A DNA stretch of 64,000 nt from contig NC_042997.1 in assembly GCF_006345805.1 (NCBI RefSeq), positions 207,638,001 through 207,702,000 of the forward strand. The letters are read 5' to 3'. Source of the DNA: Octopus sinensis (lineage: Eukaryota). A program made the translations under genes and the position numbers. Position 1 is the first letter of the stretch. Each line of letters starts with the position of its first letter. Below, piece after piece: positions 28,381 through 54,163 of the stretch. The notes under the pieces were generated by a model that was given only the letters and a program-made list of their open reading frames with translations, was not told the DNA's origin and did not search any database.

Positions 28381-28582
28381 ATACACAAACACTCTGTTGC
28401 ATATACATACATATACACATGTGTGTGTGTGTGTGTGTGTACAAGTAATGTATTATATAATTAAAATGTAATATATATATTGATATAATATAACAATATA
28501 TATCTATAATAATATATAAATATATATTAACATATATTAACATGTATTAAACAAGAACATAAGAATGCAAATATCTTTGCAG

Positions 28583-30293: not shown

Positions 30294-30319
30294 GAATATA
30301 TATATATAATATATATATA

Positions 30320-31150: not shown

Positions 31151-31537
31151 CGATAACTTCAAATATAACAAAGAATTTAGTAAAATAACTTAGTTATCAT
31201 TAAGCTAGTGTTAGGATCACAAATTGTGACTTAGTTTTGGTAAAAAATTGTAATTCAAAACTTATGAAAACAAGACATTTGTACTCAGATCCAGAGCTGG
31301 TTTCAGCCAGGTTGGTAGTGAAAAGGGTTAAGCTTATATAAAAATACCATTATTATTATTTACAGGATTGTAAAATACGGCATCAAAACAAAACCATATA
31401 TAACAAAACCATTTTCAGATGAATATGGTACTTAAGTTGAAGGCACCAGAATTTACTATGGTATTATCCATACAATTTAAAATACAGACCCATCTTCATC
31501 TTTTGTTTTTTGTAAATTCTCATATATATATATATAT

Positions 31538-31990
31538 AGGCGCAGGAGTGGCTATGTGTGGTAAGTAGCTTGTTTATCAACCACATGGTTACCGTGGTTC
31601 AGTCCCACTGCGTTGCACCTTGGGCAAGTGTCTTCCACTATAGCCTCGGGCGCGACCAAAGCCCTGTTGAGTGAGATTTGGTTAGACGGAAACTGAAGAA
31701 GCGTCGTATATATATATATATATATTATAATATATAATAATATATCTATATAATGGTGTGGGTGTTGTGGTTTGTGTGGTCTGTGTTTGTCCCCCTAGCA
31801 TTGCTTGACAACCGATGTGGTTTTGTGGTTAGTGTCCCCATTACTTAGCGGTTCGGCAAAAAAAGGGCCGATTAGAATAAGTACGGGTCTTAAAAAAGAA
31901 TAAGTCCCGGGGTCTCGAGTTACTGATTAAAGGCGGTCTCCAGATGGCCGCGTCAATGACTGAAACAAGTAAAATGAGGTAAAGAGTATA
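31538..31990 (+). mobile_element. Second SINE family, near full length (other copies at about 16415, 27285, 29250, 33120)
   Basis: ggcgcaggagtggct..gtggtaagtagcttg..ggttcagtcccactgcg..accttgggcaagtgtcttc. Many small indels. Confidence 0.75.
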
Positions 31991-32824
31991 TATATACACC
32001 ACACCACAACGTGGTTCGTGTGGTGCAGCGTATCTATATATATATATATATATAGATATATCTAATATATTATCTATATATATATAATATTACATAATAT
32101 GTGTTGTGTGTATATATATATATATATATATATACATATATATGTGTGGTGTTGTGTTTGTGTGTGCATATGCAGATTCTGTGAAAAAAGTTTTACTTTC
32201 CCTACGCTCATTAGAGTAATTTCGTTCCTTCAACAGTTTTGTCCATGTTTTGTTGTTTTCACAATGAGACCCAGTATTTTTTCAATGGCATTATTTTGTG
32301 TTTTGTTAGAATTAACGTGATGAGATGCATGTGTGTGTGAGTAGATTTCAGCTCTCTGACAATCCGAAACTCTGAGTCTTTATAACAAACAGCCACAACT
32401 AGTTGTCACATATTACTACATAATAATGTGTGTGTGTGTGGTGTGTGACTGGTATTATTATTATTATTGTTTATTTTTTAAATATTTTTTTAATGAACAC
32501 ACAAAGAAAAGAAAGTGGTCAACAAGAGAGAAACAAAGTTAGTTCTTATTAATACCATTGTAATTAATGGGGGTAAAGACCCCACTCCCGGCCATCAATG
32601 CCATGGTATTGCACCTAGAAACTTCCCCTCTGTCTATTAAAGAATCTTCTTCTAAATGATGGAATTGTATTGTTTCTTGGTATTGCAGCTGATAAATTTG
32701 CAGCTGATAAATTACTGCAATAATATCAGCTGAAATTACTGCAATAATATCACAGGTTAATTATATATATTTTGAGTAAGAACATTTGTTGGATTAAATA
32801 TGTTGTATATTTTATTTATAACAG

Positions 32825-33002
32825 GTATTTTTGGTATACCCATAGAGAAGGAACCAAATGTACAGTACAACGATAAAGAATTATCTTGATACTCACACAA
32901 ATTCTAAAATAAAGCATATTTGTCTGATTGACGTACGGAAGGAAGTAATCAGAGCTTTTAAGCTTCATCTAGAAACGGTGTTTGGAATCAGTGAAAGCAG
33001 AG
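32825..33002 (+). CDS. PARP14: PARP14-like exon, macro1 C-terminus (indels near the 5' end)
   Basis: ataacag|GT ATT TTT GGT completes STGIFG; then TTIKNYLDTHTNSKIKHICLIDVRKEVIRAFK..ESR G|gtagg. Length 178 nt is not a multiple of 3. Confidence 0.8.
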
Positions 33003-33714: not shown

Positions 33715-35402
33715 AGAGTGATCAAATTGTTGGATCAGGTGATGAAAGTCATGGAGAGGGTCATAGCCCAACTAATTAGGGAGAGAGTTAGTTTAGACGA
33801 GATGCAGTTTGGGTTTGTACCAGGGAGAAGCACCACCAACGTTATATTTCTGGTAAGACAGCTGCGGGAAATAAACCTCTGTACCTAGCCAAAGATAAAC
33901 CTCTGTACTTGGCCTTCATTGACATAAAGAAAGCTTTTGACAGAGTTCCCCGATCCCTTATCTAGAGGTCACTGCAGAAACTAGGGATAAATGAAAGGTT
34001 GGTGAGAGCTGTTCAATCCATGTACAGGGGTGCTGTCAGTAAGTTGAGGGTTGGCAAGAAGTACAGTGAAAAATTTCGGGTAGAAGTAGAGGTTCACCTC
34101 AGCCCCCTCTTATTCATCATAGTCCTCCAAGCAGTAACCAAGGAATTCAAGATAGGCTGCCCCTGGGAGCTCCTCTAAGCTGATGACTTTCCTCTAATAG
34201 CTGATTGACTATCAGAACTAAAGAAGTTTCAGGCATGGAAGCAAGGTCTAGAATCAAAGGGCCTTAGAGTTGATCTAGAAAAAAAAACAAAGTTTTAGTA
34301 AGTAGGAAGGTTGACATATCACGAATTCCTTCAGGTGGGTGGCCCTGCTTGATCTGCAGAGAAGGTGTATGTAGAAACTCCATAAGATAAACCCAGTGCA
34401 AACTATGGACACATAAGAGGTGCAGCAATGTAAAAGGTAGGTTAACCGGGAAGATAGTTGTTGTGTGTGGCAGATGTATAGGTACAATAAGCACTAGAAA
34501 TGTACAGAAAATAAACTCCATCAAATGTCTGTGAGGGGGACCTAGAAGTAGTTGACAGCTTCTGCTATCTAGGTGAACAAATTAGCAGTGGAAGTGGATG
34601 CTCCAAGAGCATAGGTGCAAGAATAAGATTAGGTTGGGCAAAGTTCAGAGAGCTTTTACCTTTGTTGGTAATGAAGAGCCTCTCCCTCAGAGTGAAAGGT
34701 AGACTGTACGATACCTGTGTGCAAACAGCCATGCTATACGACAGTGAAACATGGGTTGTGGCTGCAGAGGACATGCAAAGGCTTGAAAGAAATGAAACTA
34801 GTCTGCTTCACTGGATGTGCAATGTCAGTGTGCATGTATGGCAGAGTGTAAGCATCTGGAGAGAAAAATGGTGCACAATAGGTATCAGATGTGGTGTGCA
34901 AGAGAGAAGACTGCACTGTAGAGGGGACATGTGGAAGAGATCGACCCAAGATAGACAAGGGACGAGGTGGTGAAGAATGATCCTCAAACATTGGGCCTCA
35001 TGGTGGCTATGACTAGTGGCTGAGACCTTTGGCAATATTCTGTGCTTAAGAAGACCCATCGAGCCAAGTGAAATTGTAGTTGTGGCTGATGCCAGTGTTA
35101 TGTAAAAAGTATCTTACAAACTTTGGGTCACACAGAGGTGATAAGTTTCTGAGACCCCTGGCAATTTACCATGCTTGAGAAGACTCATCAAACCAAGTAA
35201 AATCATAGACGATGCTGGTGTCACATAAAAAGCACCCATTTCACTCTTGGAGTGGCTGGCATATGGAAAGGCATCCAGCTGTAGAAACTGTGTCAAATCT
35301 GACTGGAACCTGGTGCAGCTCTCCAGCCTATCAGTTTCAGTCAAACCGTCCAACCCATGCCAGCATGGAAAGTGGATGTTAAATGACGATGATGATGATG
35401 AT
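33715..35402 (+). mobile_element. Decayed RTE LINE (RT to 3' tail)
   Basis: IKLLDQVMKVMERVIAQLIRERVSLDEMQFGFVPG..KGRLYDTCVQTAMLYDSETW; (GAT)n tail at about 35390. Confidence 0.9.
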
Positions 35403-36059: not shown

Positions 36060-37005
36060 TTCATCCGTATCTCTATTTATTATTATTATTTATTAATTAT
36101 TATTATTCTGATCCCCCTAGTCGCCACTCTGTTTACTATTTCAGCCTCGCCTTGTTTTTGCATATTCTGTATAATTCACTCGTTATCGTTATAGATATTT
36201 AAGATCTATCTCCCTTACAGGGCTGATTAGAAATTGGCTGCCGGTTCTTCGCGGGGTTTCTCTACCCCTCTTTTTACATTGTCTGTCTGGACTCCTCTTC
36301 CTACTCCTCGACATGGCTATGCATACTTAAGCTAGTAACCTGCCTCATTCTTGATTCCGAATTCCTTTTGCCAAGTCTGTCCGTAAACGAAGTGATCCCA
36401 AGATAAGAAATCTTTGAACTTTAATTCATCCGTATCTCTATTTATTATTATTATTTATTAATTATTATTATTCTGATCCCCCTAGTCGCCACTCTGTTTA
36501 CTATTTCAGCCTCGCCTCGTTTTTGCATATTCTGTATAATTCACTAGTTATCGTTATAGATATTTAAGATCTATCTCCCTTACAGGGCTGATTAGAAATT
36601 GGCTGCCGGTTCTTTGCGGCGCGCCCGCCCTACCCTCCCCCACCACCAATACCGGATATCTCTATTTTGCTCCAACTATACCGGATGTCGTTTCTCCCAC
36701 CATTATAGGTGTCTACTCTTTGAACCCCTCTCTTCAATACGCTATTTCACCATGCATTACCCCTCTCTCGATATCCTACGTTCTACTTGCCTAGAACCTG
36801 TCCTCTGAACCACCCCTCCCACTGGTGCTCCCCTATATTTCTGCACCCCCCCACCACCATTATAGGTGTCTACTCTTTGAACCCCCCTCTTCAATACGCT
36901 ATTTCACCATGCATTACCCCTCTCTCGATATCCTACGTTCTACTTGCCTATTACCTGTCCTCTGAACCACCCCTCCCACTGGTGCTCCTCTATATTTCTG
37001 CACCC
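36060..37005. repeat. Two local direct duplications (about 190 bp at offset 365; about 140 bp at offset about 159)
   Basis: ttcatccgtatctct..ggctgccggttc at 36060 and 36425; ccaccattataggtgtctac..ggtgctcc at 36698 and 36857. Confidence 0.85.
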
Positions 37006-38018
37006 CCCCCATAAAAAAAAGCACCATCTGAACGTGGCCGATGCCAGACCCCTCTGGCACCTGTGCAGGTGGCACGTAAAAAACACCCACTACACTCGCG
37101 GAGTGGTTGGCGTTAGGAAGGGCATCCAGCTGTAGAAACACTGCCAGACTAGACTGGAGCCTGGGGCAGTCCCGAGCTCTCCAGACCCCGGTCGAAACCG
37201 TCCAACCCGTGCTAGCGCGGAAAACGGACGTTAAACGATGATGATGATGATGATGATGATGATATCAAATTCCAATATTATCGTAATTTACAGACTCTTA
37301 AAGGTATTTGTGAAAATTTTCATTTAAAAATAACCATTTTCCCAAAAGTTCTCATCATCATCATCTTTTAACGTCTGTTTTCCATGCTAGCATGGGTTGG
37401 AAGGTTCAGCTGGTGTCTGGGAGGCCAGGAGGCTGTACCAGGCTCCAGTCTGATCTGGCAGTGATTCTACAGCTGGATGTCCTTCCTAATGCCAACAACT
37501 CCGTGAGTGTACTGGGGGCTTTTTACGTACCACTGGCACAGGGGCCAGAGGAGGCTGGCAACGGCCATGATCGGTTGGTGCTTTTTACGTGCCCAAAGGA
37601 ACCAAATTGACTGGTGTGAATTTTCTGAAACTCCTCTCTCCACTTCCTCAAAAACATTTTTTTCACAACAAATTCCGAACTTACTGGAATCTACACCATC
37701 TGAAGCCTGTTTTAATAAATGTTTTAAGAAAAAAAGGAGGAGGAAGATCACATTTTACTAACCAGTTTCACTGTTTGCAGACTCTGAAAGTTTCAAGGTA
37801 TGTTCTTCAATGTATTTTTAGTCCATGTGGTAGAAGAAACAGATGGAAATAATGTTATATAGCCTTGTCGCTATATAAAAGGTGGGGGGGGGGGTGACTA
37901 CAAGTTAGTACGTATTCTCTTGCTAAATCATATTTTCAGAAAGGAATATCATTATTATTTATATGGAATAAAGAAGTTCTTTTAAGAGAGAGAAGAATGT
38001 TTAATTGTTTATTTTCAG

Positions 38019-38155
38019 AAACCCCATCATCAAACCCATCCCTTCCTGATCCACGACAGAAAGCAACCCCTATGACACCCAGAACTAATGTGACATCCAG
38101 AGAAAATGCTGGCATCAAAATACAACTGATGACTGGTTCAATTTCTAATGTATCT
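38019..38155 (+). CDS. PARP14: PARP14-like exon, linker plus macro2 start (module A exon 1)
   Basis: ttttcag|AA ACC..ETPSSNP..GIKIQLMTGSISNVS|gtgagt; 137 nt, phase 1 to 0. Confidence 0.88.
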
Positions 38156-38436
38156 GTGAGTAAATAGATTCATGTAACTTATTTATATTTAATTGTTATT
38201 TCATTTCCAAATGAGGAATCATTACAGTTAATTAAAACATTTTCTCAGTCAAACTCAAACATTTTATTTCCTTCACATCTGATATCTTGAGTATATCTTT
38301 TGCTAACTTTAACAACCTCAAACTTACTACAGCCATTCTGTAGAGCCTTTCTTAACAACAATATCAACTGCAACAATGTATCTCTCTTCTCTCCATGGAA
38401 TGTTCCTTAGTTGTTTACCATTAATTACTTTTGTAG

Positions 38437-38664
38437 GTTGATGTCATCGTTAACAGCACCAATAAAAACCTCCAGCTTAATGATGGTTCTATCTCCAAAT
38501 TTATTCTCAATGCTGCTGGTCCCCAGATACAAAGCGAATGTAGCCAGAAATATCCTCAAGGTATTTCTACATCTAACATAGCCATTACTAAAGGATATAA
38601 CCTCAAATGTAAGAATGTATTTCATCTGGCATTACCTCCCTGGGATGAATATCCCCCTGATTCA
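38437..38664 (+). CDS. PARP14: PARP14-like exon, macro2 core (module A exon 2)
   Basis: VDVIVNSTNKNLQLNDGSISKFILNAAGPQIQSEC..LKCKNVFHLALPPW; 228 nt, AG/GTAAGT. Confidence 0.92.
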
Positions 38665-39244
38665 GTAAGTATCAATCATATGATATTGATTTATTGAAAG
38701 AGTTAATGTTTGAAGAGAACCTTATGCATGTTGTGTGAGAATCATAAAGCAAATGTCAGCATCCTGTTTAATATTTGTTCTTCCAAGTTATCATTGGAAG
38801 GAAGCAGAAGATATCGATGAACAGGACACTTTTATATATAAATAGAAGGGAAAAAGCCTCATGGCCTAACAACAGTTATGCGACTGATAAATAAGACTAT
38901 ATTCAAACATATTTCTCTGTTTTACTCTCTGTATTGGTGAGTTTTTCTCTGTCATGGCACGAGCACTAGAGAGGTTGTCATGTCCTCAACAACACTAAAG
39001 ACTCCTCTTGGGTCTGCATTGTCTCTCTTCATTCAACAACCATTTTACACGGTGGATTGGGTCTGTTTTATTGTAGCAGCAACATGAGTGAGGTTGCCTT
39101 GTCCCTTGCAGGACTAAAGAGTGATAGGAATGACAGTTGTGAGAGGAGAATATATTTATTACAACTTAATGGTTTCTTCCTGTAATAAGAAAATAATTTA
39201 ATAAAATGTCTATTACCATTTACTAGACACTTATTTTCTTTTAG

Positions 39245-39472
39245 ATTCTGGCAAACTTGACTCAAATAATAACCATTTGTCTGGAAACTGCAGAGAGAAT
39301 GGGTGCAAAGAGCCTTGCATTTCCTATATTAGGAGCTGGAAAATTGAGGTACCCCATTGAACAACTACCTGGAATTATGTATGAAGCTGTGAAAAACTAC
39401 TCAAATCAAAATTCAAGCCAGATCAAAGTTGTAGACTTTGTGGTTTATCCTCAAGACACAGAAATAGTAAAG
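39245..39472 (+). CDS. PARP14: PARP14-like exon, macro2 C-terminus (module A exon 3)
   Basis: ILANLTQIITICLETAERMGAKSLAFPILGAGKLRYP..FVVYPQDTEIVK; 228 nt. Confidence 0.92.
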
Positions 39473-41064
39473 GTTGGTTGTTATATTTGTTGTTTGTTGT
39501 TTTATGCAGCATTGGGAGGGGGAGAAGGTGCCGAAAGGAGGTGGGAGGAGGAAAGGTAGTCAGGATGGGGTGGGGGTAGTATGTGCCTATTCTGCTTTCA
39601 GGTGATAGAGGAAATGGTGGGTGTGAGGGGATGAAATGTGTGTGTATGGAGTGGAGAAGAAGGTTGACATGGCAGAGCCCGTCATTGACAAACATTATCA
39701 TTATTAGGATATCAATTCTGTTGTGGTGGGCATGTCTTCTTGAGTACAGCAATGTACCATATATCTCATCCCTTTGTCATCTCCTTCATAAGGCTCACTG
39801 TTTTGAGATTGGCCTTCAATTCTTCATCCCATGTCTTCCTGGGGTCTCCCTCTTCCACAGCTTCCAACAACATCAAATTCCAACTTGATATTTTTCGAAT
39901 TAACCCAAAACATATTCTGTAATTAATGAAGGAAATGATTATGAAGATAAAATATGGAATCAGTTTTGTAAATTTATTTGTTGGTGTCTTAGAATTCTTC
40001 AGTTGAAATGTTGGAATCTTTGATGTGTCTCATGGCCCTGTCTTCCATACTTTTAGGTTAGCTTGGTTTTCTTCAACTCTTCCATTCCATGATTTAATTC
40101 TTTGTAACTTGATATGGATTCAGTGTAGCTACCTCCTCCTCTACAACTACCACCACTACCACTACCTACCCACAACATCCTTCAACAATTCCATTTTGGT
40201 TACTGACCAACCAAAAATGTGTTAATGGCACCACCAGAACACTGATGGTTTTCTTTCATTTCTGTTCTTCAAAGTGGAACGCTTTGAAAACTCTTCCCAC
40301 AATTCTTTACATTTCTTCTCAAAGTTGGATGAATCAATTAAGGGGCTTCTATGCTGTGGCTTGACTTGCTAGTAATAGCAGCCAAGTGTCCCTGGCAGAG
40401 TTGTAAGGGGGTCAGATAGGATACCTTCTGCTATTTGTTTCATCCCTTGGCATTCTGAGCTCAAACCCTGTCATGGCCATGCTGGATTGTTAACTTAATC
40501 CGTCATTTGGTTTCACACCAACCCTCGGCACCTTGGCTATGTTTACTGGAATTATCTTTGTCACAAGCATTTCAGTGAGGTGTCTGGTTTGAGGGAATTT
40601 AAGATTTCAGCAAAGAAGGAAGGGGAAATGTTTTAACTTAATCTGAATCTAACGAAAGACTAGCTTGCTGTTTGAATTGGTCAGTGACTGAGTGAATTCA
40701 GCTGAAGATTTTTATGATGTCAACAAGTAATGTTCACAAGTATTGAAGAAAGTGATATATATAGAGAGAGAGAGCAAGGGTAAAAAGACAGAGTGTCAGA
40801 GAGAGAGAGAGAGAGGAAATACATGTGCTTTTAAGAATAGGTTCAGCATGGTGTCAGTCTGAGTGTTTTAAAGAACTGATTTCTATTATTATTATATTTT
40901 AAAAGGATGGATGTAACTCTTCTCAAAGGTAAACAGACAAGACAAAGAGCATGATGGGATTGCAATAGATATTTCATTGGTTGAATGATATTTCAGAAGC
41001 CATCTGGTTCGCCAGTCCTCAGTCAAATCGTTCAACCCATGCTAGCATGGAAAGCAGACGTTAA

Positions 41065-41128
<64 letters not shown>

Positions 41129-41349
41129 AGAAGCCTGTCTTTGTCGAGTTCAAAGGGAAAAGTGATAAAAATTCAAAATTATAGAAATTCAAATCTAAAT
41201 TATGAACGAGAGCAACCAGCATCCACACGTTGATGGAATAACATCATCAGTTTTTAAGCTTCAATTTTTGAACTGGTGAAAAGAAAAAAAAAATGAAAGA
41301 AAAAAGAAAAGGAAAAAGAAGAATATTTAATCAAACAGTTTTGTGAAAT

Positions 41350-42870
41350 TCTTTCATTTTATTCATTCATCCAGGCCATGATTTTAATAACCCACAAACA
41401 TTTCTCCTCATGCATTTTGAGTATTGAAAGTGAAACAGATTTAGAATATTTACTGAGAATATGCACTTTCTCGAGTCTTTTTCAAAATTGCAGCCATTTG
41501 ATGCAAAATGTTCAGCAAGTTCCGTCCAATTACCGTTATTGTGCCTGATGTCATATCTGTGCCCATTAAATCTTTTGTTTAATTGTTCTTTTGTGCAACC
41601 AACATAAACCAAGTTGTGTTTCGTGCATTCTGCTGCATACACCAAATGGGAATCTCTACATGTCCCACCTTCTGTATAAATCATAACATTTCTGATATGA
41701 TGCCTGATGGAATTCACTTGATTCATGTTGTACAGTGAACAGGGCTTACCTCTTTTGCGGCTGTTTTTCAGGGTACAGCATGCAGGTACCCCAATGTTAG
41801 TTTCCTTGGAGTCAAAAGTAGAGGTTAATAATTCTCTTATATTTTTTTTTTAGAAATAATTAATAGCCAGAAGGTTTATTACAAATAATTAATTGCCAGA
41901 AGGCTTATTAAAGATAATTCATATCCAGCAAGTTTATTAAAGATAATTAATGGCCAGCAAAGCTTATTAAAGATAGCACCAAGTTTTGTCAGTGAACAGG
42001 TCGCAGTTTTAAAGTGAAGGAAATATTTTGACACAAATGAAATTTAAATGTTGAAGTGAAACTAATGGTTTTTGTGTGTTCTTGAATGGCTTACAAACAT
42101 CTTCCATGCTGCAATTGTTTTGTTTCAGCACATGGTCTCAGATCAAGTCACTTGCTATGCAAGTACATCTCTGTAATAGTTAGAAGGTTTATTAAAAATA
42201 AGTCAGAAAGTTTATTAAAACTAATAACAAGGCGGCTTATTAAAGATAATGAATAGCCAGAAAGTCTATTAAAAATAATAACGATAGAAGCAGTATTAAT
42301 ACCAAAATATAATCTTTATGTCTTTCTACTGTAACAAAAAGATGAAGGAAATTTCTGTCCCCTGTCGAACTGTTTGTGAACCTTTTCCTCTTTGAATCTT
42401 TTCTCTTTTCTTTGTCATGAAGGACCACGGTCTGAATTGTCAGGTTTCCTCTCATTCTTCCTTACAATGTCAAAATAATTACCCTGTACTCCTGTTTGTT
42501 CCTGAAATAGTTTTGGACAAACAGGATGTAACAAGAAAAACCCCAAATTCAACATTCTTGATAGACATTTTGACTGCAAACACAAGATCCAACAGTTCTA
42601 ACCATGATGGTAACTGGAGAGGAAAAACAGTGGAACTTCAGCTACATGAAGACACCATTACCACATGTTTAACTGCAATGACACCACATCGGTGGCCATG
42701 TAAAGTGTGGGAGGTTTTTCTGCTGCATTCACTCTGTTACCATATTGACATCGGTCTCACATCTCTCAGAAGACAGGAAGGCCATGGATGGAGTATCTTT
42801 GATCTGAATGACAAAGTAATTTTCCTCATTTCCTTATTACAGAATAGAAATGACTCATTAAATATTTCAA
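41350..42870 (-). mobile_element. Penelope-like element remnants including a GIY-YIG endonuclease
   Basis: CRDSHLVYAAECTKHNLVYVGCTKEQLNKRFNGHRYDI..TELAEHF (41367-41726). The assignment of the 42380-42870 segment is weaker. Confidence 0.75.
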
Positions 42871-42970
42871 ATATTTTGTTTGTCTTTTGTTAAATTAAAT
42901 CTATTCTTTTTGCAAAAATGGGAAAATAAAACATAAAAATGATTCTCATTGTTTTTTTCCTTTTTAAAAG

Positions 42971-43025
42971 AAATTTTATGAATATCTCCAAAACAGACAG
43001 AAAAATGAAAGACTTCTTCCAAGAG
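42971..43025 (+). CDS. PARP14: PARP14-like linker exon (module A exon 4)
   Basis: tttaaaag|KFYEYLQNRQKNERLLPR G|gtaaac; 55 nt, phase 0 to 1; paralogous to 51576-51639. Confidence 0.8.
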
Positions 43026-43096
43026 GTAAACAATTTGTTTGTTAATATTGAATATTATGGTGCCTTGTCATGTCTTTCTCTGTTAAACATTACTGA

Positions 43097-45061
43097 TTAT
43101 TATTATTATTATTCAGTAGTTTTATTTTTATAGCGTGCTTTCACTTCACTACCGAGCGCAGCTCTGTGTGCCTTGGGTATGTGCTGTGATTTGTTGTGAT
43201 GCTCTGATGGTTACTATATTGAAAGTGTTCTGCGTAGGATGTGTGCAGTGCCTAGTAGTGCAATTTTCTGTATGTTATATGTGTTTGTAAGTCCTGGTGT
43301 TTTTGTTATGTATTTGTCTGAATATTTTTTTATCATGCCTAATGCACCTACTATGATAGGAATTGTTTCTGTTTTAGATTCCACATTCTAGTTATCTCTA
43401 TTTCCAGATCTTTGTATTTTGAGAGTTTCTCCATTTCTTTTAGAGACACGTTGTCATCTGCCGGTATTGATACATCAATTAGAAAGCATTTTTTTTTTCA
43501 TGATCTCTGATAACTATATCTGGTCTGTTGGCCTTAATTTCTCTATCTGTGTGTATCGGCATATCCCAGAGTATGGTCGCTTTCTCATTTTCTGTGACCT
43601 TTTCTGGTATGTGCCTCTACCATCTTTTTTCTGTTGTTATTCCATAATGTTGGCATAGCTTCCAGTGTATGTAGGTCCCAAATCTGTCGTGTCTGTGAAT
43701 ATATTCCTTCTCAGCCAGGACTGGGCAGCCAGAGATAATATGATTTATTGTTTCTTGTCCATCTCCACATATTCTGCAGTTACTTGTTATATTTCTTTTC
43801 ATTATATGTTTTTGGTAATTTCTGGTGGGGAGGCTTTGGTCTTGTGCTGCAATTAAAAATCCCTCTGTCTCTGCTTTTAGTCCTGAGCTTCTCAACCACT
43901 GCTGGGATTTTTCTTTGTCTATTTCTTTTGCATTTAGTTTAGTCCAATACTTGCCATGAAGGGGCTTTTTTTGCCATCATTTTATCATGGTCCGTTGCTG
44001 TTCTAGTTTTAATTTGGATTTCATTTGTTTTATAGCTTTTGTTGTTTCTTCTTCTTCATAGTTGTTAGGTGGTATGACTTCTTTTTTGCATTTGTCAGCT
44101 TCCTTAAATACTGAGAACAATTTTTTGTTTTGCTCGTGTTTTTTCCGCTATTTGTATCAGTTTTCCTTGCTTCTGAAGTAGATATTTTTGCAGTCCTATG
44201 GTGGTTATTTCATAATAGTTTTCCAGCTTTATAAGGCCTCTACCACCTTCTATACGTTGTAGCCTTTCTATGTCAGATTTTGGGTGATGCATCCTAGATC
44301 CTGTCATTATTTTTCTTGTTTTCCTATCTATTTTGGTGAGTTCATTTAGTGTCCAGTTAAGATATTGTAGCTGTAACTTATAACTGGGATGGCTAAAGTG
44401 TTAATACCTATCATCTTGTTTTTAGCATTGAGCTCTGTTTTTAGTATTGATCTAACTCGTCTATAGTATTCTTTCTTTATTTTCTCTTTCATTTGTGTGT
44501 GTTGTGTCTTATCTAGTTCATGGATTCCTAAATATTTGTAAGTTTGGCTTTGGTCTAATTCTCTTATTTCATTGGCTTTATCTAGTGTGATGTTGCTACT
44601 CTTAACTAGTTTTCCTCTTTTCAGGGTTACTTTGTCGCATTTTTCTAATCCAAATTTCATATCTATTTCTTTGTTAAATCCATGAACTGTCTTTAGTAGT
44701 GTTTCCAGCTGTTTGTCATTTGTAGTGTATAGTTTTAGGTCATCCACATATAAAAGGTGGCTAATCATTTTGCTGTAACATTTATATCCACATCCAGTTC
44801 TATGTAGCATATCAGATAGAGGTGACAGTGCCAAGCAGAAAAGGAGTGGAGAGAGCGTGTCTCCCTGGAATATTCCTCTTCTAATGGGGATGGCTTTGGT
44901 TTTCACAAGTCCCTCTTTTGTTTGGAGCTGTAACACTGTTTGCTATTTATTCATAGAGTGTCCTATGTATTTTATAATTGTTGGTGCTACTTTGTTAATG
45001 GCTAGTGTTTCGAGGATCCATGTTTGGGGGATGCTATCAAACACCTTTCTGTAGTCGATCC
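43097..45061 (-). mobile_element. R4/Dong-like LINE copy 1 (RT plus RLE, (TAA)n tail)
   Basis: GIFQGDTLSPLLF..HLLYVDDLKLY..FGLEKC..YKYLGI..KTELNAKNK; LKAETEGFLIAAQDQ..CRIC..ETINHIISGC. Confidence 0.92.
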
Positions 45062-46639
45062 TTATTATTATTATTATTATTATTCTATGTTTGACTTTTG
45101 CTTTTCATTTGTACAATTTGGCTCCAAGTCTCACCCAGAAGTTCATGTTGTTGTTATACCTAGAGTGCCATATATTTGGTTTTGTATTTAGTGTTGTACT
45201 AGTGAATGTCTAAAAAAAAAAAACCATACGAAAATTATGTTTGTTTTAAAACTAGAGATTACATAGAAAGTATTTTGCGTAGGATATGAGCACTTCCCAT
45301 GAGCACTATCTTTTGAGTTTCTGCCATTTTGGGGTTTTCCTGGTATCTGAGTTAGGTAGCAATCAGCCTCTTTTGTTATCATTCCCAGGGCACCTATGAC
45401 AACAGGTATTGTTTTAGTCTTCAGGTTCCACATTTTGCTGATTTCTATTTCAAGATCTTTATATTTGCTCAGTTTTTGGTAGGTCTTGACAGATACGTTT
45501 ATTTCGATTGGGACAGTCATATCAATGAGGAGGCATGTTCTTTGTCTGAAGTCTTTCAATATGATGTCTGGCCTAGTTGCATCTATCTTTCTGTTAGTTT
45601 TAATGGTGAAGTTCCAGAGGAGTGAGATGTGGTCATTTTCAAGCACTGGAGGTGGTTTGTGTTCCCACCAGTTTTTTTCATGGGGCAAATCCAGGTTTTT
45701 GAAAATTACCCAGTGAATATATTGTGCAGTTCTATCATGCCTGTTGAGATACTCTGTAGGCGCTAGAAGACTGCATTTAGAGACAACATAATCAATGGTT
45801 TCATTTTGTTGTTGACATACACGACATTTTGGGCTACTGCCGTTCTTTAATATGTTGGCCTGGTAGTTCCTTGTAGGTAGGCATTGATCTTGAGCTGCTA
45901 TGATAAACCCTTCTGTTTCAGATTTTAAGCCAGAGGCTATTAACCATTGATGGGTCAGGGCTTTGTCAACATCTGCATTATTCGCTCTCTTTGGTATTTG
46001 CCTTAGAGAAGTTTTTCTTGCCATTTATCATTCAGAATATCTAAGGCAGCAGTTTTAGCATGTGTTTTCATGCGCTTAGCTTTTTCTGTGCTTGTTTCTT
46101 GTGTGTCTAATTCCAAAATTTGTTGTATTCGGAATTCACTTAGATATTCCTTTGCCGGTTTTGTTACTGAGTATGATGCTTTCTTGTTTTCATGTTTTGA
46201 GACAAGTTTTAACATCCAGTCCTCAAAGTTTTTCAGGTAGGTGTCTAGGCCAATTGTAGCAATCTTCATTGTTATTGCCAGTTGTAAAAGTCCACGGCCT
46301 CCCTCTTTTCTTGGCAGATAAAGTCGTTCTATATCTGCCTGAGGGTGGTGCATTCTTTGCACTGTCAACAGTTTTCGTATTTTTCTGTCAAGATTACATA
46401 TCTCAGTAATTGACCAGTTAACGATATTGAAACTGTAAGTCACGACTGGTATGGCTAAAGCATTGATCGCTTCAATCCTGCTTCTCGCATTCAGTTCTGT
46501 CTTGAGTATTGCTCTTATTCTGCGATAACATTCTCTCCTGATCCTTTCCTTCATCACTGAATGCCATATTCCGTCCCCTTCAATTACCCCTAGGTACTTG
46601 TAGTTCTCCACTGGGTCTAACTCTTTTATGACATGCTGC
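45062..46639 (-). mobile_element. R4/Dong-like LINE copy 2
   Basis: YKYLGVIEG..KTELNARSR..RKEGGRGL; [33 protein letters not shown]. Confidence 0.92.
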
Positions 46640-46950
46640 TTATTATTATTATTATTATTATATGTTTCACTTTTGCTTTATATTTGTACAAGTTGGCTCC
46701 AAGTCTCACCCAGAGACCTCAAGAGACAACAGGTTGGAAGTTCACATTGTTGTTATGCCTAGTGTGCCATATATTTGGTTGTTTTTTTGTGTTGTACTAG
46801 TGGATGTCTAAAAAAAAAAAAATATTTGTTTTAAACCTTGAGATTACATAGAAAGTATTTTGTGTAGGATATGAGCAGTTCCCATGAGCACTATCTTATT
46901 AATTTCTGCCATTTTTGGGCTTCCTGGTATCTGAGTTAGGTAGCAATCAG
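46640..46950 (-). mobile_element. R4/Dong-like LINE copy 3 (3' end only)
   Basis: Same 3' UTR as copy 2; ADCYLTQIPGSPKMAEINKIVLMGTAHILHKILS. Confidence 0.85.
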
Positions 46951-47039
46951 CCCCTTTCTTCTTCTTCTTCTTCTTCTTCATCACCATCACCATCACCATC
47001 ACCATCACCATCATCATCATCATCATTATTATTATTATT

Positions 47040-47206
47040 AATGTGGCAAGCTGGTATTTCGTCTGCTGCTACATTCTGAGTTCAAATTCAGCCGAGGTCG
47101 ATTTTGCCTTTCATCTTTTCAGGGTCAATAAATTAAGTACCAGGTGAACGCTGGGGCTGATGTAATCAACTCACCCCTTCCCCAACATTGCTGCAAAATT
47201 TGAAAC

Positions 47207-47256
<50 letters not shown>

Positions 47257-47475
47257 GTAGTAGTAGTAGTAGTAGTGTGTTGATCAGGCAGAATCGTTAG
47301 CACACTGGATGAAATGCTTAGTGGTATTTTACCAATTGCTACATTCTGAGTTCAAATTCTGCCAAGGTCAGCTTTGTCCTTCATCCTTTCAGGGTCAATA
47401 AATTAAGTACCAGTGAAACACTGGGGTCAATGAAATACTCTCCCCCAAAATTTCAGGCTTTGTGCCTTTAGTAGA
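47040..47475 (+). mobile_element. Two SINE fragments separated by (TAT)n/(TAG)n
   Basis: ttctgagttcaaattc..gcctttcatc..agggtcaataaattaagtaccag occurs twice. Confidence 0.8.
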
Positions 47476-48537
47476 AAGGGTTATTATTCTTATATTATAT
47501 AAAGATTGACATAACCCCTCATTAAGGACCAGGTGATGCATTGTATTCTTGAGCAAAACCCTTCATTTCACGTTGCTCCAGTCCACTCAGCTGACAAAAC
47601 TGGACCCTATTCCAGCCTGGATGTTTCCAGTTTGGGGTTTTTGTTGTTTCCTCAGTTGATATCTGAGCCCTGCTTCTCCATCCTCAAGTCATGCATCCGC
47701 TTTCTATATCTTCTTACGGGGCTTCCCTCCATCATGAACAGGTTAACTCAAAAAAATAACACCCTGACAGCTGTATTCAATGCCTGAGTCCATTTTGTTC
47801 TAGCAGCTGTATAATGAAGACTGGGTCTGTGCTGCTTAGCCATGGGGCACCTGCTGGGTGACAGTCTCTCACCTGTAGTTTTGTCCTCGTTTATGCTGTT
47901 GTTTGTATTCTTTTATCCATTACTCATGCAGAAGAAAGTGTTGATAAGGTGTCACAACCCCCAGTGTTTTTATCAAGACACCATCTCTAGTGGGATCTTT
48001 TAAAAAAAGACTCAAGTGGACTCCTTCAACCCTCAAGAGTTTAAAAGAGCTATCCTTCGCTGGACACCAGCCTGGTATGCAGATAGGAGAAGTGTTAAAC
48101 ATGAAACATGGCAAACTAAGATGTAGCTAAGAGGTGGGGAGGGGGAGATTAGTGAAAGCAGAAAAAGGGATGATCGATGGAAGGGTGTGTGGACAGAGAT
48201 GATGATGCAAGTGAGGCGACTGGTATTAGCGAAAGGGTGGTGGTGGTGGTGGTGATGAATATGTGCAGATTCTGCTCTCAAATGGTTACAGCAGCAAAGA
48301 AGGACCGTAGTTAGAAGAGTAATGGAGGGATGGGTGTTAGGAAGATGAGATGTGGTGAAAGGGATGCTTCACAGGGACAGATGTGGGTGTAGGGCCCAGC
48401 ATGGGCATGAATAAGCACAATGCATTTAGGACCTCACTTTTGCTATAACAGATGTGTGTTTGTGTATCATTTTGTTCAACTTGGACCAGGATGGGATATG
48501 GACATTAAACCATGATGGGATAATGAGGATAATGGTC

Positions 48538-48569
<32 letters not shown>

Positions 48570-48570
<1 letters not shown>

Positions 48571-48845
48571 CGCCTCGACTGGCTTCCGTGCCGGTGGCAT
48601 ATAAAATACACCAATCTGACCATGGCCGTTGCCAGCCTCGCCTGGCACCTGTGCAGGTGGCACGTAAAAAGCACCCACTACACTCTTGGAGTTGTTGGCG
48701 TTAGGAAGGGCATCCAGCTGTAGAAACATTGCCAGATAAGACTGGAGCCTGGTGCAGCCTTCTGGCTTCCCAGATCCCCGGTCGAACTGTCCAACCCATG
48801 CTAGCATGGAGAACGGACGTTAAACGATGATGACGATGATGATGA
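48570..48845 (+). mobile_element. RTE 3' tail about 60 bp upstream of module B
   Basis: Nearly identical to 29985-30293. Confidence 0.85.
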
Positions 48846-48904
48846 TACACACACACACATACATGTATATATATATACAGACACAGATATTTGTTTATTT
48901 TCAG

Positions 48905-49041
48905 CAACCCCTTCACCAAACCCATCCCTTCCTGATCCACGACAGAAAGCACCCACCATGACACCCAGAACTAATGTGACATCCAGAGAAAATGCTGGCA
49001 TCAAAATACAACTATTGATTGATTCAATTTCTAATGCATCT
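48905..49041 (+). CDS. PARP14: PARP14-like exon, macro3 start (module B exon 1)
   Basis: ttttcag|CA ACC..GIKIQLLIDSISNAS|gtgagt; 137 nt. Confidence 0.88.
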
Positions 49042-49322
49042 GTGAGTAAATAGATTCATGTAACTTATTTATATTTAATTGTTATTTCATTTCCAAATGA
49101 GGAATCATTAAAGTTAATTAAAACATTTTCTCAATCAAACTCAAACATTTTATTTCCTTCACATCTGATATCTTGAGTATATCTTTTGCTAACTTTAACA
49201 ACCTCAAACTTACTACAGCCATTCTGTAGAGCCTTTCTTAACAACAATATCAACTGCAACAATGTATCTCTCTTCTCTCCACGGAATGTTCCTTAGCTGT
49301 TTAACATAAATTACTTTTCTAG

Positions 49323-49550
49323 GTTGATGTCATCGTTAACAGCACCAACGAACATCTCCAGCTTGACAGTGGTGCTATTTCCAAATTTATTCTCCATAAT
49401 GCTGGTCCTGAGATACAAGATGAATGTAGCCAGAGATATCCTCAAGGTATTTCTATGTCTGAAATAGCCGTCACTAAAGGATACAACCTCAAATGTGACA
49501 ATGTATTTCATCTGGCATTACCTGCCTGGGATGAAAATTCTTCTCATTCA
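49323..49550 (+). CDS. PARP14: PARP14-like exon, macro3 core (module B exon 2)
   Basis: VDVIVNSTNEHLQLDSGAISKFILHNAGPEIQDEC..LKCDNVFHLALPAW; 228 nt. Confidence 0.92.
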
Positions 49551-50376
49551 GTAAGTATCAATCATATGATATTGTTTTATTGAAAGAGTTGTTGTACAAC
49601 CCTAGGTAATCATTGATCCAGCATCCCTGTGGCATGAATGGAATTGTCCATAAACCTCTGCACAATCCACAGATGTGTTTTTCCAGTCATACAACACCTC
49701 CGTTTGCTTCAAGACAGTAGCATGTACTTTGATGTCCAGTGATGTACAGTTTGGGCTACAGTGTGACAGTCTGGTGTTGTGGTATTCTGTACAGTTTCCA
49801 AAGCATGGATTCTGGTTGTTTGAAATTGATGTAGACTCTATTGTAGATATTCCCTGAACATTTCGACTCAACCATAGTCTCTTGTGTGCAGTGGAGAGTC
49901 TTTTGTGCCTGTGGCACCCTGCCTTGTGGGTGGTTTTGTTGCTTCTTGCAGTATGTTCTCACCCAGATTTCCCTCTTGTAAATAATAATTAATCTCCCCT
50001 CTTCCAAATTATTGGGTTTTTTTTGTTAATTACAAAATTCCACCGGAATTACACTGTGCAACCACCAAATCTTGGAACATTTCTCTTTCCATTCATGGCA
50101 TCCATATCTTCACTCAGACCAGACTTTCTGCTATCACATGATCTATGTTGATCCTTCTGTCACATGATCTGTGTTAATCCAATGACCACATGATCTGTTA
50201 ATCCAATAATCACTAGAAGTTGTTTAATGTTATTCAAATGTCTAAAACATTTCTGTTTAGAACAACAAATTCTTTGTGGAATCTGTTAATCAAAGAATAT
50301 ATTAATTACAACTTAACGATTCCTTCCTGTAATAAAATGTTCATTATCAATTACTAAACAATTATTTTTTTTTTAG

Positions 50377-50604
50377 ATTCTGGCAAACTTGACTCAAATA
50401 ATAACCATTTGTCTGGAAAAAGCTGAGGAATTGGGAGCAAAAAGCCTTGCATTTCCTATATTAGGTGCTGGGATATTGAAGTACCCCATTGAAAACCTAC
50501 CCAGAACTATGTATGAAGCAGTGAAAAACTACTCAAATCAAAATTCAAGCCGGATCAAAGATGTTTACTTTGTGGTTTATCCTCAAGACACAGAAATAGT
50601 AAAG
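50377..50604 (+). CDS. PARP14: PARP14-like exon, macro3 C-terminus (module B exon 3)
   Basis: ILANLTQIITICLEKAEELGAKSLAFPILGAGILKYP..FVVYPQDTEIVK; 228 nt. Confidence 0.92.
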
Positions 50605-51575
50605 GTTGGTTGATGTTTTTGTTGTTTGTTGTTTTATGTTGATATTCTTGGAATTTACCAAAAAACAATATTCTACAAGAAACAAAGGAAATAAAAATGA
50701 TCCTCATTTACAGCCCTTGTTCCATTTTGTAATGGGTGCAACATTTTGACTGGCTCCAATGAGCCACAAGGGTTTATTAAACCCCAGTGTCTGCTTTGGC
50801 ATGGTTTCTATGGCTGGATGCCATTCCTAGTGCCAACCACTTCACAGCATGTCCTGGGTACCTTTCTTCATGCTACCTTTAATGCTGTTCATTATATTTT
50901 GTTGTGCTTTATCCTTTCATTATACCATTTCCCATCACCAAATTCTTGCATCTGAAATATTCCATTGTAACATTTGAAGCTAAGAATGTTTTGCTTGTTG
51001 TTGTTGTTGTATCCAAAACCAACTCTACAAGAATTGGTAACACTGAAGGACTTCTTTGCAGTTTGGCTGCTGATTTTATTGTTGTTATTTAACCCCGAGT
51101 CACATCTGATTCAGCAGATTTGAAGACAGTGATGTCTGTGTTCCTTTCACTCTTTGACACATTTCACAATGCCACACCAATAATCTCTGTCTGCCTCCTC
51201 CCCCCCCCCCCTTTCATTGTGTTTCTTGTTCTGTGTCTTTTCCAATAAAATCAATGTAATTGAGTGGAACTCAACCTCCTGTCGGAGTGGGGAAATCTCC
51301 AAAATATAAAATCTGTTACGGTCGAGAGTTCAACAAAGTAGCAGGGGTCAGCAAACCCTATTGTATTATTCTGTAAGTAAAAAATCCTCCCCAAACTACA
51401 GAATATTCAAAAGCCTGTTCCTCATAGGAAGTTATTCTATGATACAATAAATGGAAATATTAATTTAAAACAATATTTGTGATAGAAACAATGAATTAAA
51501 ACATTGCATAGTAATTAACAGAAATTAATTATTTTTTCATTGAGTGATAATGAATTATTTGCTTACTTTTAACAG

Positions 51576-51639
51576 AAATTTAAAGAATATTTCCAACAAA
51601 TGCCAGCAGATGGTTCATATGGTTCACATGTATCATCAG
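51576..51639 (+). CDS. PARP14: PARP14-like linker exon (module B exon 4)
   Basis: tttaacag|KFKEYFQQMPADGSYGSHVSS G|gtaaat; 64 nt, phase 0 to 1. Confidence 0.82.
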
Positions 51640-51673
51640 GTAAATTCTTTTGTTTTTTTTCTTATATTAAATA

Positions 51674-52000
51674 CTAGCAGAGATACCCGGCGTTGCCCGT
51701 GTTACATGCAATTGAAGAATTAGACTTTTTTTCTGTTATATTTTCTGTAATGAACTGGAATATCTATGTTTCAAATTTCAACAAAATTGCAGATGAGGGT
51801 TATTTCCCTCTTTACACACCCAAACAAAATTGTAATCGTGCCACATGTATCCCATACTACTGATTTTTATGCGCATATTCCAAAATTCCAGTCTTATAGA
51901 ACCTGTAAAAGGATTTTGCTCCTGAAAAATGAAGGTCATGAAGCTCTAACATGTGAGAGTTAAGGCCCCTGTTGGGGGTGGGTGTCTTAGTGTCAACCAG
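51674..52000 (-). mobile_element. Non-autonomous Helitron 3' end
   Basis: Minus strand ends gggcaacgccgggtatctctgCTAG; 5' limit unclear. Confidence 0.7.
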
Positions 52001-52269
52001 AGAATTTGAATTGTTGAGAATCTTTTTAACTTGGGTCTTATATCTATTGTTTGAATTTCTTTGAAATAGGAAATATATGTTCACTGGGTTTGTAAAAAAA
52101 CGCAAAGGCTACAGGAACCCAAAAGATAAATGATCACAATAAGCAGTCAGTTACACTACCCTAGTCGTTACCATTCCCAATGTAGGATTCCTCACCATCC
52201 AGGTGACAGGCACAGCTGTAAGATGCATTACGAATCTATAGCAATTGGAAGGGCGAAGACTAGAGGGAA

Positions 52270-53512
52270 ATGAAGGCCAATATACTCCATTTTATGTGCA
52301 ATGTCAGTGTGCATGTGTGAGCAAAGTACATGTTGAGAGAGATTGGCAAAAGAGGCATAAGATATGACATGCAAGAGAGAAGGCTGCAGTTGTATGCACA
52401 TGTGATATGTATGGATGAGGGTAGCTGTATTAAGAAGTGCTGGTTGCTAGAGAAGGATGGAACCAGAGTTTATTTTAATGCAGTCACCTCAGATACATCT
52501 TTACCAAGGGATACACCTAAACCAGTTGTACAGTATCCCACCCATGAGGGATTGATGCTAGATGGGTCAAAATGATTAGTGTAATGAATGAAGATTCTTG
52601 CATTGGCTGAGCGTGGCCGATACCAGTGCCACCTGTGCCGGTGACATGTAAACAGCTCAATCCAAATGTGGCCAATGCCAGTGCCACCTGACTGGCACAT
52701 AAAAAGCATGCACTACATTCTCAGTGGGTGGCATTAGGAAGGGCATCCAACTGTAGAAACCTTGCCAAATCAGATTGGAGCCTGGTGCAGCCTCCCAGCT
52801 TGCCGGTTCTCAGTCAAACTGTTCAACCCATGCCAGCATCAAAAGCAGACATCAAACGGCAATGATGATAATGATGTTGATGATATATATATTCCTGCTC
52901 AGGTATGGTCATGTGATGCATGTGGACAAAGACAGCTGTGTAAAGAAGTGCCGATCTCTAACTGTGGATGGAACCTGTGGAAGAGGTAGACCCAGGAAGA
53001 CATGGGACAAAGTGATGAAGCATGATCTTTTGATGTAAGGTCTCACAGAGGCGATGACTAGTGACTGAGACCTTTGACGATATGCTTTGCTTGAGGAGAC
53101 CCTTCAAGCCAAGTGAAATCGTAGTTGTAACTGGCACCCATGCTGGTAGCATGTAAAAAACACCTTTCAAGCATTGGACCTTATGGACACAAAATGGCTG
53201 GTGATGGTAGGATATGAAAAGCTCCTTTCAAGTTTTGGGCCTCATGGAGGCAACAACCAAGATCTTTGGCATTATGTCATGCTTCAGAAGAAGACCCATC
53301 AAGCCAAGAAAAATCGCAGTAGTGCTAGATACCAGAGTCATGCAAATTGGCACCCATCATACTCTTGGAGTGGTTGGCATTAGGAAGGACATCCAGCTGT
53401 AGAAACCATGCCAAATGCGACTGGATTCTGGTGCAGCCCCTCAGCTTACTAGCCCTGGTCAAACTATTTAATCCATGCCAGCATGGACATTGGACTTCAA
53501 ATGATGATGATG
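52270..53512 (+). mobile_element. Cluster of RTE 3' fragments and tails
   Basis: QERRLQLYAHV..; CVKKCRSLTVDGTCGRGRPRKTW; tails ending near 52880 and 53510. Confidence 0.8.
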
Positions 53513-53825
53513 AATTAGAGAGAATTTAAACTTGAATACAAAAAAAGAAGAAATAATTTTAACAACACTTGACATCGTTCACTACACAGAGTTCACTACA
53601 CTACATAGCAATAATTAAAGAGCAGTTGATATCACTCCCCACAGGGATAAGGTGATAGTCTTTTTCAGGTTAACTTCATTATTTCAGGAACTGATAACTC
53701 TTCACTAAACAGAAAAACAGAAAACACTAGAATTATTATTTAATCTTGAAGCTGCAACATAAGAAATCTTCTGCTGCTTGTTTGGTTATTTTTCATTGAC
53801 AAAATGAACATTTCTTCTATTTCAG

Positions 53826-54031
53826 ATGATGAAGATATTGATGATGAAGATGATGAAGATGAAGAAATAGAAGATAATGTCTCTGCTGGTCAAAAAGTTG
53901 TTGGTGTCACATTGAAATTCTTTGCTAAATACCAAAATCTTGACAATGCTATAGAAACTGTTAAAAAGGAGTACGATTCTCTATTAACAACTCAGGAAAT
54001 ACCATTTGATGTGGACTTGACAGAATCTCGA
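53826..54031 (+). CDS. PARP14: PARP14-like exon: acidic tract plus post-macro (KH-like) region
   Basis: tttcag|AT GAT..DDEDIDDEDDEDEEIED..VTLKFFAKYQNLDNAIETVKKE..TESR|gtaagt; 206 nt, phase 1 to 0. Confidence 0.85.
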
Positions 54032-54163
54032 GTAAGTTGTCCACAACAATACAGGGTTCTTATTTAATTATTATTGTTGTTATCATTTTCTGATTGAAAT
54101 GCATTTTATTTTCATTTTCCAACTGGGTCTCAACCAGAGCCCTAAGGTACATATATATATATT

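Follow-up and report, generated by a model that had tools for sequence, protein, structure and literature searches.

Introns more alike than exons in the tandem macro-domain cassettes of an Octopus PARP14-like gene family, with short-tract gene conversion as the probable cause

In the snake-venom genes for phospholipase A2 (PLA2) and three-finger toxins, all introns are conserved and exons are accelerated, with non-synonymous divergence (dN) at or above synonymous divergence (dS) and with exon segment switching (ASSET). In class I and class II genes of the major histocompatibility complex (MHC), introns are homogenised, whereas the diversity of the peptide-binding exons is kept by balancing selection together with segmental exchange, and dN exceeds dS at the peptide-binding codons. 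In the gibbon L/M opsins, the divergence of exons exceeds that of introns whether synonymous or non-synonymous sites are considered, dN does not rise above dS, and the introns have been homogenised by gene conversion, the tracts of which lie mostly in introns (PMC3213168). Additionally, positive selection has been documented in the macrodomains of primate macro-PARPs (PMC4038475), and clustered, lineage-specific duplications of PARP14-like genes have been reported in lancelet and sponges (PMC13224862). Here, we analyzed a 64,000-nt stretch of Octopus DNA (NC_042997.1, positions 207,638,001 to 207,702,000 of the forward strand; hereafter, the window), in which a predicted PARP14-like gene carries two tandem macro-domain cassettes, A and B, with first introns that are far more alike than their exons.

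Each cassette, or module, contains exons e1 to e4 and introns i1 to i3, and the window holds two copies of it (Table 1). In both modules, e1, e2 and e3 are 137, 228 and 228 nt long, the phases are identical, and every splice site is canonical, with AG before and GT after the exon; the sites and junctions of module A e1 also match those of annotated O. sinensis and O. vulgaris homologues. The two modules, which are 80% identical to each other, differ at 7 of 281 nt in i1 (97.5% identity), at 11 of 137 nt in e1 (seven replacement codons plus the split first codon, and two silent codons), at 34 of 228 nt in e2 (19 replacement and four silent codons), and at 22 of 228 nt in e3 (11 replacement and eight silent codons). 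Runs of identical codons occupy the first eight codons of e2 and the first 14 and last 12 codons of e3, and the linkers begin with KFYEYLQ in A and KFKEYFQ in B. All of these counts, including exon lengths, phases, linker and identical runs, reproduce exactly those of a preliminary description of this DNA.

The contrast between i1 and the exons was evident in several tests: i1 against all exon positions (Fisher p=3e-6), i1 against synonymous sites (21/134, p=2e-6), and the probability that at most seven of the 54 differences of homology block 1 fall in i1 (p=7e-6). The longest A/B-identical run, 147 nt at 38249-38395, had p=1e-4. By the method of Nei and Gojobori (NG86), dS was 0.176 and dN 0.106, both exceeding the i1 divergence of 0.025, so that synonymous divergence was 7 times that of i1; the ratio dN/dS (omega) was 0.60 overall, and 0.81, 0.66, and 0.42 for e1, e2, and e3. 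In e2, 29 of the 34 differences lay within 3 nt of another, compared with none of the seven in i1. The substitution spectrum was ordinary (39 transitions and 28 transversions; A<->G 21 and C<->T 18 of 67 differences) without an excess of A-to-G, which rules out an RNA-editing-related or exon-specific mutation bias. In homology block 2, the exon was more conserved than its intron flanks, which is the ordinary pattern for old duplicates, and BLAST gave no alignment between A and B in the middles of i2 and i3.

In a protein search, O. sinensis and O. vulgaris yielded more than 20 PARP14-like proteins, 65-87% identical, with relatives in Argonauta hians. Six genomic loci were compared, i.e., four of O. 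sinensis (L001, L002, L004, and L005), one of A. hians (L003), and one of O. vulgaris (L006). At the DNA level, the sample comprised 11 Octopus cassettes (A, B, and nine others) from at least five genes, out of at least 26 cassettes, taken from the window and the assemblies GCA_006345805.1 and GCA_951406725.2; it leaves out the genes of proteins P0001, P0002, P0015, and P0017. For many kb, the sequence of L001 (O. sinensis, chromosome CM016859.1) runs collinear with that of the window at 94-98% identity, and L001 appears to be the orthologous locus of the window in a sister species; L002, L004, L005, and L006 are paralogous genes.

All 11 Octopus cassettes carried the same i1, at 92.5-98.2% identity to that of window A, whereas the identity of the other Octopus copies to window A was 77-93% in e1, 85-95% in e2, and 77-95% in e3. 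Mean pairwise divergence among ten copies was 3.6% in i1 and 10.5% in e2, and e2 exceeded i1 in 44 of 45 pairs. Conserved i1 is a property of the family and not a peculiarity of A and B. The divergence of i1 was 2-5% between any two cassettes and ranged from 1.1 to 5.7% in A/B comparisons. In the pairs of cassettes of the same type with a reliably alignable i2, i1 and i2 had diverged by 2.5/2.2, 3.9/4.0, 3.6/3.1, 5.0/5.0, 4.6/4.2, and 3.9/3.2%, respectively; large insertions in i2 of S5_A, S4_B, and S5_B are misaligned by global alignment, and local BLAST values were used for these. Between the window and its L001 orthologues, e1 and e2 differed by 8-11% and the introns by 0.7-4%, with no significant difference between i1 (9/562) and i2 (34/1397). 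The excess in e1 and e2 consisted mostly of clusters in which one orthologue has the state of the other module or of the paralogues.

Some O. sinensis copies contained frameshifts or deletions. In L001, e1 of module A has an 18-nt in-frame deletion (9948-10066), the first ~55 nt of e1 of module B (about 32481-32617) are not homologous, and e3 of module B (33948-34176) has a 1-nt insertion, the annotated protein P0004 having a frameshifted tail; L001 is either a decaying orthologue or affected by assembly indel errors. In L005, tandem copies of e1 (26266-26394 and 26495-26622; 89% and 83% identical to window A e1) precede a single i1. The second cassettes of L004 (48318-50611) and L005 (49914-52172), both on unplaced scaffolds, differ at 1/228 nt in e2, 0/222 nt in e3, and 1.4% in i2, and presumably represent haplotigs or a duplicate of very recent origin. 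Both join a very divergent e3 type (22-24% from window B) to a B-type i2, indicating that recombination breakpoints also occur inside introns.

For most of the 37 amino acids at which A and B differ, the two modules carry alternative states of a motif, both of which are present in several other family proteins; about ten of the differences are private. For example, QLNDG and QLDSG each occurred in seven family proteins, AERMG in six and AEELG in four, and LPGIM in seven and LPRTM in nine. Ligand loop 1 reads NK(N/Q)LQLNDGS in A-type cassettes and NEHLQLDSG in window B, S4_B, and S5_B, and the alternative states of loop 2 are GKLRYPIEQLPGIM and GILKYPIENLPRTM. Among the sites specific to the window, the state was seen in another paralogue at 15 of 20 for A and 7 of 15 for B. 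Rather than having newly arisen in this gene, most of the states that differ between A and B are already present in other family members.

The variable sites were placed relative to conserved macro-domain motifs through alignment to PARP14 macro2. In a comparison of 26 family modules, variability was highest at positions 25, 29, and 30 in loop 1, position 123 after GAG in loop 2, and several others. The proposal that ligand-facing segments diverge holds insofar as the loops are among the most variable positions, but this is not evidence of positive selection. Family-wide omega was 0.9 in e2, 0.5 in e3, 1.03 in loop 1, 0.28 in loop 2, and 1.17 at hypervariable codons, and none of the NG86 values, for A/B or family-wide, was significantly above 1. 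The diversifying selection suggested in the preliminary description finds no support in these values or in the synonymous divergence, which itself far exceeds that of the intron. Near-neutral evolution and mixed pressures are equally possible for the exon variation. In these genes, conversion will inflate dN/dS based on orthology, as orthologous exons differ by 8-11% and the introns by ~2%.

The second and third introns fall into two types: i2 and i3 are A-type in window A, S1_A, S4_A, S5_A, and S2_B, and B-type in window B, S1_B, S4_B, and S5_B. A-type and B-type i2 have in common only 40 nt at the 5' end, with 1/40 differences between A and B, and about 96 nt of 72-78% identity at the 3' end. 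Since i2 and i3 are mostly unalignable between types, the A/B split is old, and the data support an old duplication of which the first block has since been homogenised. In the quartet formed by window A, window B, and their L001 orthologues, 28 sites in the i2 3' flank and e3 distinguish the two modules in each species, compared with one site in i1 and five in e2. Across the family, no i1 site separates A-type from B-type cassettes, whereas e2 keeps the B-type loop-1 signature.

Recombination was detected by the pairwise homoplasy index (PHI) in block 1 (p=0.005) and in e2 (p=0.0005), and the Hudson-Kaplan minimum (Rm) was at least 18 recombination events. In a Sawyer-type run test over 55 pairs, the two best tracts were those of the two intragenic A/B pairs. 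The tract of the L001 pair (38304-38522) spans 49 consecutive polymorphic sites from the middle of i1 into e2 (p=2e-5; Bonferroni 0.001); it crosses the intron-exon border and has erased the B-type loop-1 signature in B, which is kept in window B, S4_B, and S5_B. The tract of the window pair lies in e1 (38074-38126, p=0.0012) and coincides with a candidate post-speciation A/B conversion tract of 56 nt. Five quartet sites were 'concerted', and four of them, in this e1 tract, set the window pair apart from the O. sinensis pair. The recombination signal, the shared tracts, and the concerted sites identify concerted evolution by interlocus gene conversion. Accordingly, the earlier proposal that intragenic conversion homogenises an older duplication stands as regards the two A/B tracts, but was too narrow, as i1 is common to 11 cassettes.

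Taken together, we favor, with a probability of about 0.6, an account in which an old cassette duplication, homogenised non-coding DNA, and short-tract conversion that reshuffles retained exon variants all take part. A macro2-type cassette of phase 1-1 would have been duplicated in tandem within an Octopus PARP14-like gene belonging to a clustered and recently radiated multigene family. The non-coding DNA of the cassettes would be young or homogenised family-wide, its homogenisation in the first block dating from roughly the time at which the family radiated, and the exons would carry older variants, with two or three alternative motif states at most variable patches. Continuing short-tract conversion, both within the gene (A<->B) and between genes, would re-assort these exon states. 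Exchange between near-identical introns would leave no trace in the introns, yet would move clustered exon differences; because conversion moves exon blocks and is invisible in introns, the exons, including their synonymous sites, look 3-7x more diverged than i1. The exon variants might persist because selection opposes their loss, through differentiation or diversity of the ADP-ribose-binding surface, rather than by chance. Selection against loss is favored because of the sharp change at the e1/i1 junction, the near-identical 40-nt flank beyond e2, and the persistence of both states.

Several points weigh against this account. The selective step is one that we infer from the pattern, and dN/dS below or near 1 also fits relaxed constraint. 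The DNA sample covers 11 of at least 26 cassettes, the presumed orthology of the window and L001 rests on collinearity at 94-98% identity, and the degenerate O. sinensis copies could reflect pseudogenes or errors of assembly. Furthermore, PHI, Rm, the Sawyer-type run test, and NG86 were run as simple re-implementations and not as the reference programs. A neutral history is also conceivable, if unlikely, in which the duplication of A and B is old, conversion happened to cover i1 in one or a few ancestral tracts shortly before the radiation, and random patchy conversion with chance survival of exon differences followed. The agreement of the A/B divergence of i1 with the 2-5% between genes would fit a single event at the radiation, omega of about 0.9-1 in e2 and the degenerate appearance of several copies are as expected, and the tract in O. 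sinensis did cross the exon border and erase a loop-1 difference. Nevertheless, the drop in variability coincides with the e1/i1 junction within 5 nt, the near-identical 5' flank of i2 makes e2 an island between two homogenised flanks, and both states persist at many exon patches when no i1 site separates the two types. Somewhat less probable is a recent conversion between A and B only, after which diversifying selection on ligand-facing residues would have made the exon differences. Intragenic A/B tracts do exist, residues of both loops belong to the most variable columns, omega of 0.6-1.0 is high for an enzyme-like domain, and vertebrate macro-PARPs are under recurrent positive selection (PMC4038475). 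On this scenario, however, i1 should not be equally similar to cassettes of other genes megabases away and of another species; amino-acid selection alone cannot produce a synonymous divergence (0.18) that is 7 times the divergence of i1, and most of the differing states pre-exist in the family, with no omega significantly above 1.

The remaining explanations concern i1 itself, the exons, and the assembly. There is little prospect that i1 is held constant by purifying selection because it harbours a functional element, be it a small RNA, a regulator of splicing or transcription, or a partner sequence for RNA editing. Its length was 281 nt without indels in seven of the 11 copies (279, 280, 279, and 294 nt in the others), and its orthologous differences were slightly, though not significantly, fewer than those of i2. 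However, an Rfam scan of 37000-52500 at E<=1 gave no match in either i1, the other matches being a sub-threshold MIR6217-like one and a chance CrcZ, and folding stability showed no excess (z +0.96 in sense, -0.36 in antisense, and -0.66 with flanking exons). Retention of i1 leads to a stop after 3 codons. In the Argonauta locus, an nhmmer profile of the 11 copies had no match in the homologous introns, its best hit (E=0.59) lying outside them, which rules out deep conservation. Its matches in about 450 kb were at the 11 cassette positions only, which rules out a dispersed repeat or introner-like element. Argonauta has an intron of 592 nt and unrelated sequence at the same position, so that the position of i1 is ancestral. 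Because i1 diverges as much as i2 within type and lacks an Rfam match, a stable fold, and an Argonauta counterpart, it is not a constrained functional element. Even more improbable is that the family expanded recently while its exons alone evolved at an accelerated rate or were hypermutated, the scenario put forward for snake-venom PLA2. Paralogous genes do differ by 2-5% in introns and 8-20% in exons, and the contrast is seen even between orthologues; but A and B have non-homologous i2 and i3 and so split long ago, the differences form clustered blocks shared among copies with an ordinary spectrum and no A-to-G excess, and once paralogue-shared states are removed, lineage-specific changes amount to ~1% per lineage, of the same order as in introns. 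As for collapsed or chimeric repeats that make the introns look alike, tandem and dispersed near-identical segments are error-prone and the indels of some O. sinensis copies may be sequencing errors, but the probability of such an artefact is negligible: the same structure with i1 was found at 11 places in the window and the two assemblies, including the orthologous O. sinensis locus, and each copy has private differences and distinct flanking introns.

The octopus cassettes resemble the venom genes in having introns far more similar than exons, synonymous sites more diverged than introns, and segment-wise exon replacement; unlike in those genes, i2 and i3 of A and B are non-homologous, and omega is below or near 1. 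Similar to the MHC, the family is multigene, its introns vary less than its ligand-binding exons, its motifs form a patchwork re-assorted among members, and synonymous divergence is raised in the variable exons, whereas its omega is at most ~1 and an immune role is suggested by homology to vertebrate PARP14 alone. As in the primate L/M opsins (PMC3213168), tandem paralogues have exons that exceed introns in divergence, dN is not greater than dS, tracts are detectable, and the paralogue-specific signal is present in exons and absent from introns. Unlike the opsins, the octopus duplicates are cassettes inside one gene, and the family to which they belong has more than 20 such cassettes; exchange is therefore many-to-many and the exons are mosaics of several states, and homogenisation between A and B is limited to the first block, as i2 and i3 are non-homologous.

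In Argonauta hians, the PARP14-like gene at L003 likewise has two cassettes with an intron at the same position and mosaic similarity. In contrast to Octopus, identity between the Argonauta cassettes, introns included, is 97-98% across more than 2 kb, with 0/228 differences in e2, 12/571 substitutions and two indels in i1, 9/231 mostly amino-acid-changing differences in e3, and 5/1190 in i2. This near-identity reflects either recent large-tract conversion (concerted evolution) or an independent recent duplication, and the mosaic of these differences could stem from conversion from a third copy or from selection on e3. The L003 cassettes also have a mosaic of their own, in which 9397-11474 corresponds to 22593-24649 and 13567-14396 to 24642-25471.

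Modules A and B match Pfam Macro PF01661 at 71.8 and 76.5 bits (cut-off 22). Among human macro domains, A scored 87 bits against PARP14 macro2 (3q71/5o2d), 74 against PARP9, 55 against macro3 (4abk), and 53 against macro1 (3q6z), and B scored 99.9, 67, 45.8, and 50 bits, respectively. Module B, initially labelled macro3, is ruled out as a macro3-type domain by these scores, and both modules are assigned by sequence similarity to the PARP14 macro2 type. The upstream domain, tested with the sequence of an O. sinensis paralogue, matches macro1 of PARP14/PARP9, giving a predicted layout of macro1 + macro2 + macro2. As A and B are both macro2-type, the three-macro architecture appears to have been reached independently of vertebrates, as the preliminary description had suggested.

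The last macro1-domain exon leaves 1 nt, which completes the first codon of A e1, and with the cassette in phase 1-1, e4 of A joins e1 of B in frame (LLPR followed by ATPSPNPS). On the + strand, the macro1 exons are followed in order by A, B, and the PARP catalytic exons (61546-62251) with compatible phases, and annotated homologues combine PF01661 with PF00644. We therefore predict a PARP14-like gene with a macro1 domain, A, B, and a PARP catalytic domain. Like vertebrate PARP14, PARP9, and PARP15, the octopus gene is predicted to combine a macro1-type domain with further macro domains and a PARP catalytic domain, and the family shows lineage-specific clustered duplication and turnover. Unlike the vertebrate macro-PARPs, the octopus gene lacks a macro3-type domain, and its second and third domains are lineage-specific duplicates; unlike the primate macro-PARPs, in which positive selection is shown, its omega is not above 1. 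The two coding exons between module B and the catalytic exons have 70-90% identity to the family proteins P0009, P0010, P0017, and P0019.

The only assembly gap in the window, 100 N at 23893-23992, lies well upstream of the modules. A long (GAC)n microsatellite is present in i3 of A (41073-41127), and a trinucleotide microsatellite lies between the modules (47207-47256). Multiple copies of a repeat of ~250 nt resembling a short interspersed element (SINE) were found, with CCATGCTAGCATGGA..CGTTAAACGA at the end, ahead of a (GAT/GAC)n tail. An inverted pair of them (37010-37593), immediately upstream of module A, forms a long hairpin, which explains the sub-threshold MIR6217-like Rfam match at 37203-37399 (40.9 bits versus a gathering score of 110).

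Table 1. Positions of cassette elements, homology blocks, and other features in the window
Feature	Position	Strand	Remarks
Homology block 1	A 38002-38704 = B 48888-49590	+	BLAST, 703 nt ungapped, 54 mismatches; homogenised block
Homology block 2	A 39147-39506 = B 50294-50638	+	BLAST, 85% identical
A/B-identical 56-nt stretch of e1	38072-38127	+	States common to window A and B, not to the O. sinensis orthologues
Module A e1, S/P-rich linker and first beta strand	38019-38155	+	137 nt, starts in phase 1
Module A i1, conserved intron	38156-38436	+	281 nt; 97.5% identical to module B i1
Module A e2, N-terminal half of macro domain, VDVIVNSTN motif and ligand loop 1 NKNLQLNDGS	38437-38664	+	
Module A i2 (A-type)	38665-39244	+	Aligns with B at first 40 nt and last ~98 nt only
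Module A e3, C-terminal half of macro domain, ligand loop 2 FPILGAGKLRYP	39245-39472	+	
Module A e4, linker KFYEYLQNRQKNERLLPR	42971-43025	+	55 nt; in-frame splice to module B e1
Module B e1	48905-49041	+	
Module B i1	49042-49322	+	281 nt
Module B e2, loop 1 NEHLQLDSGA	49323-49550	+	B-type signature, also in paralogues S4_B and S5_B
Module B i2 (B-type)	49551-50376	+	
Module B e3, loop 2 FPILGAGILKYP	50377-50604	+	
Module B e4, linker KFKEYFQQMPADGSYGSHVSS	51576-51639	+	64 nt
Upstream macro1-type domain, same gene	26974-33002	+	Exons about 26974-27219, 28582-28833, 32821-33002
Downstream exons, same gene-family architecture	53843-62251	+	53843-54058, 60322-60693
PARP catalytic-domain exons	61546-61683, 62057-62251	+	Homologues carry PF00644
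SINE-like repeat copies	37010-37257 (+), 37352-37593 (-), 48598-48846, 35213-35402, 40998-41086, 52650-52886, 53350-53513		

A literature search found no paper on the octopus PARP14-like family, and the present case is a known evolutionary pattern in a new example, from a previously undescribed octopus gene family. The locus provides a clean and quantified invertebrate case of introns that are more alike than exons between duplicates, and it indicates that such similarity should not be read as positive selection without a view of the whole family. Should selection be what maintains the exon variants, the residues that vary in the two ADP-ribose-binding loops would point to differing ligand or viral-target specificities, and the family would be a candidate antiviral system of cephalopods. 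As a tentative and rather doubtful extension, Octopus may keep a combinatorial repertoire of macro-domain PARPs, in which conversion shuffles loop and surface motifs among more than 20 cassettes under selection that favors diversity. If true, the ADP-ribose readers of an invertebrate antiviral system would follow a strategy like that of the MHC.

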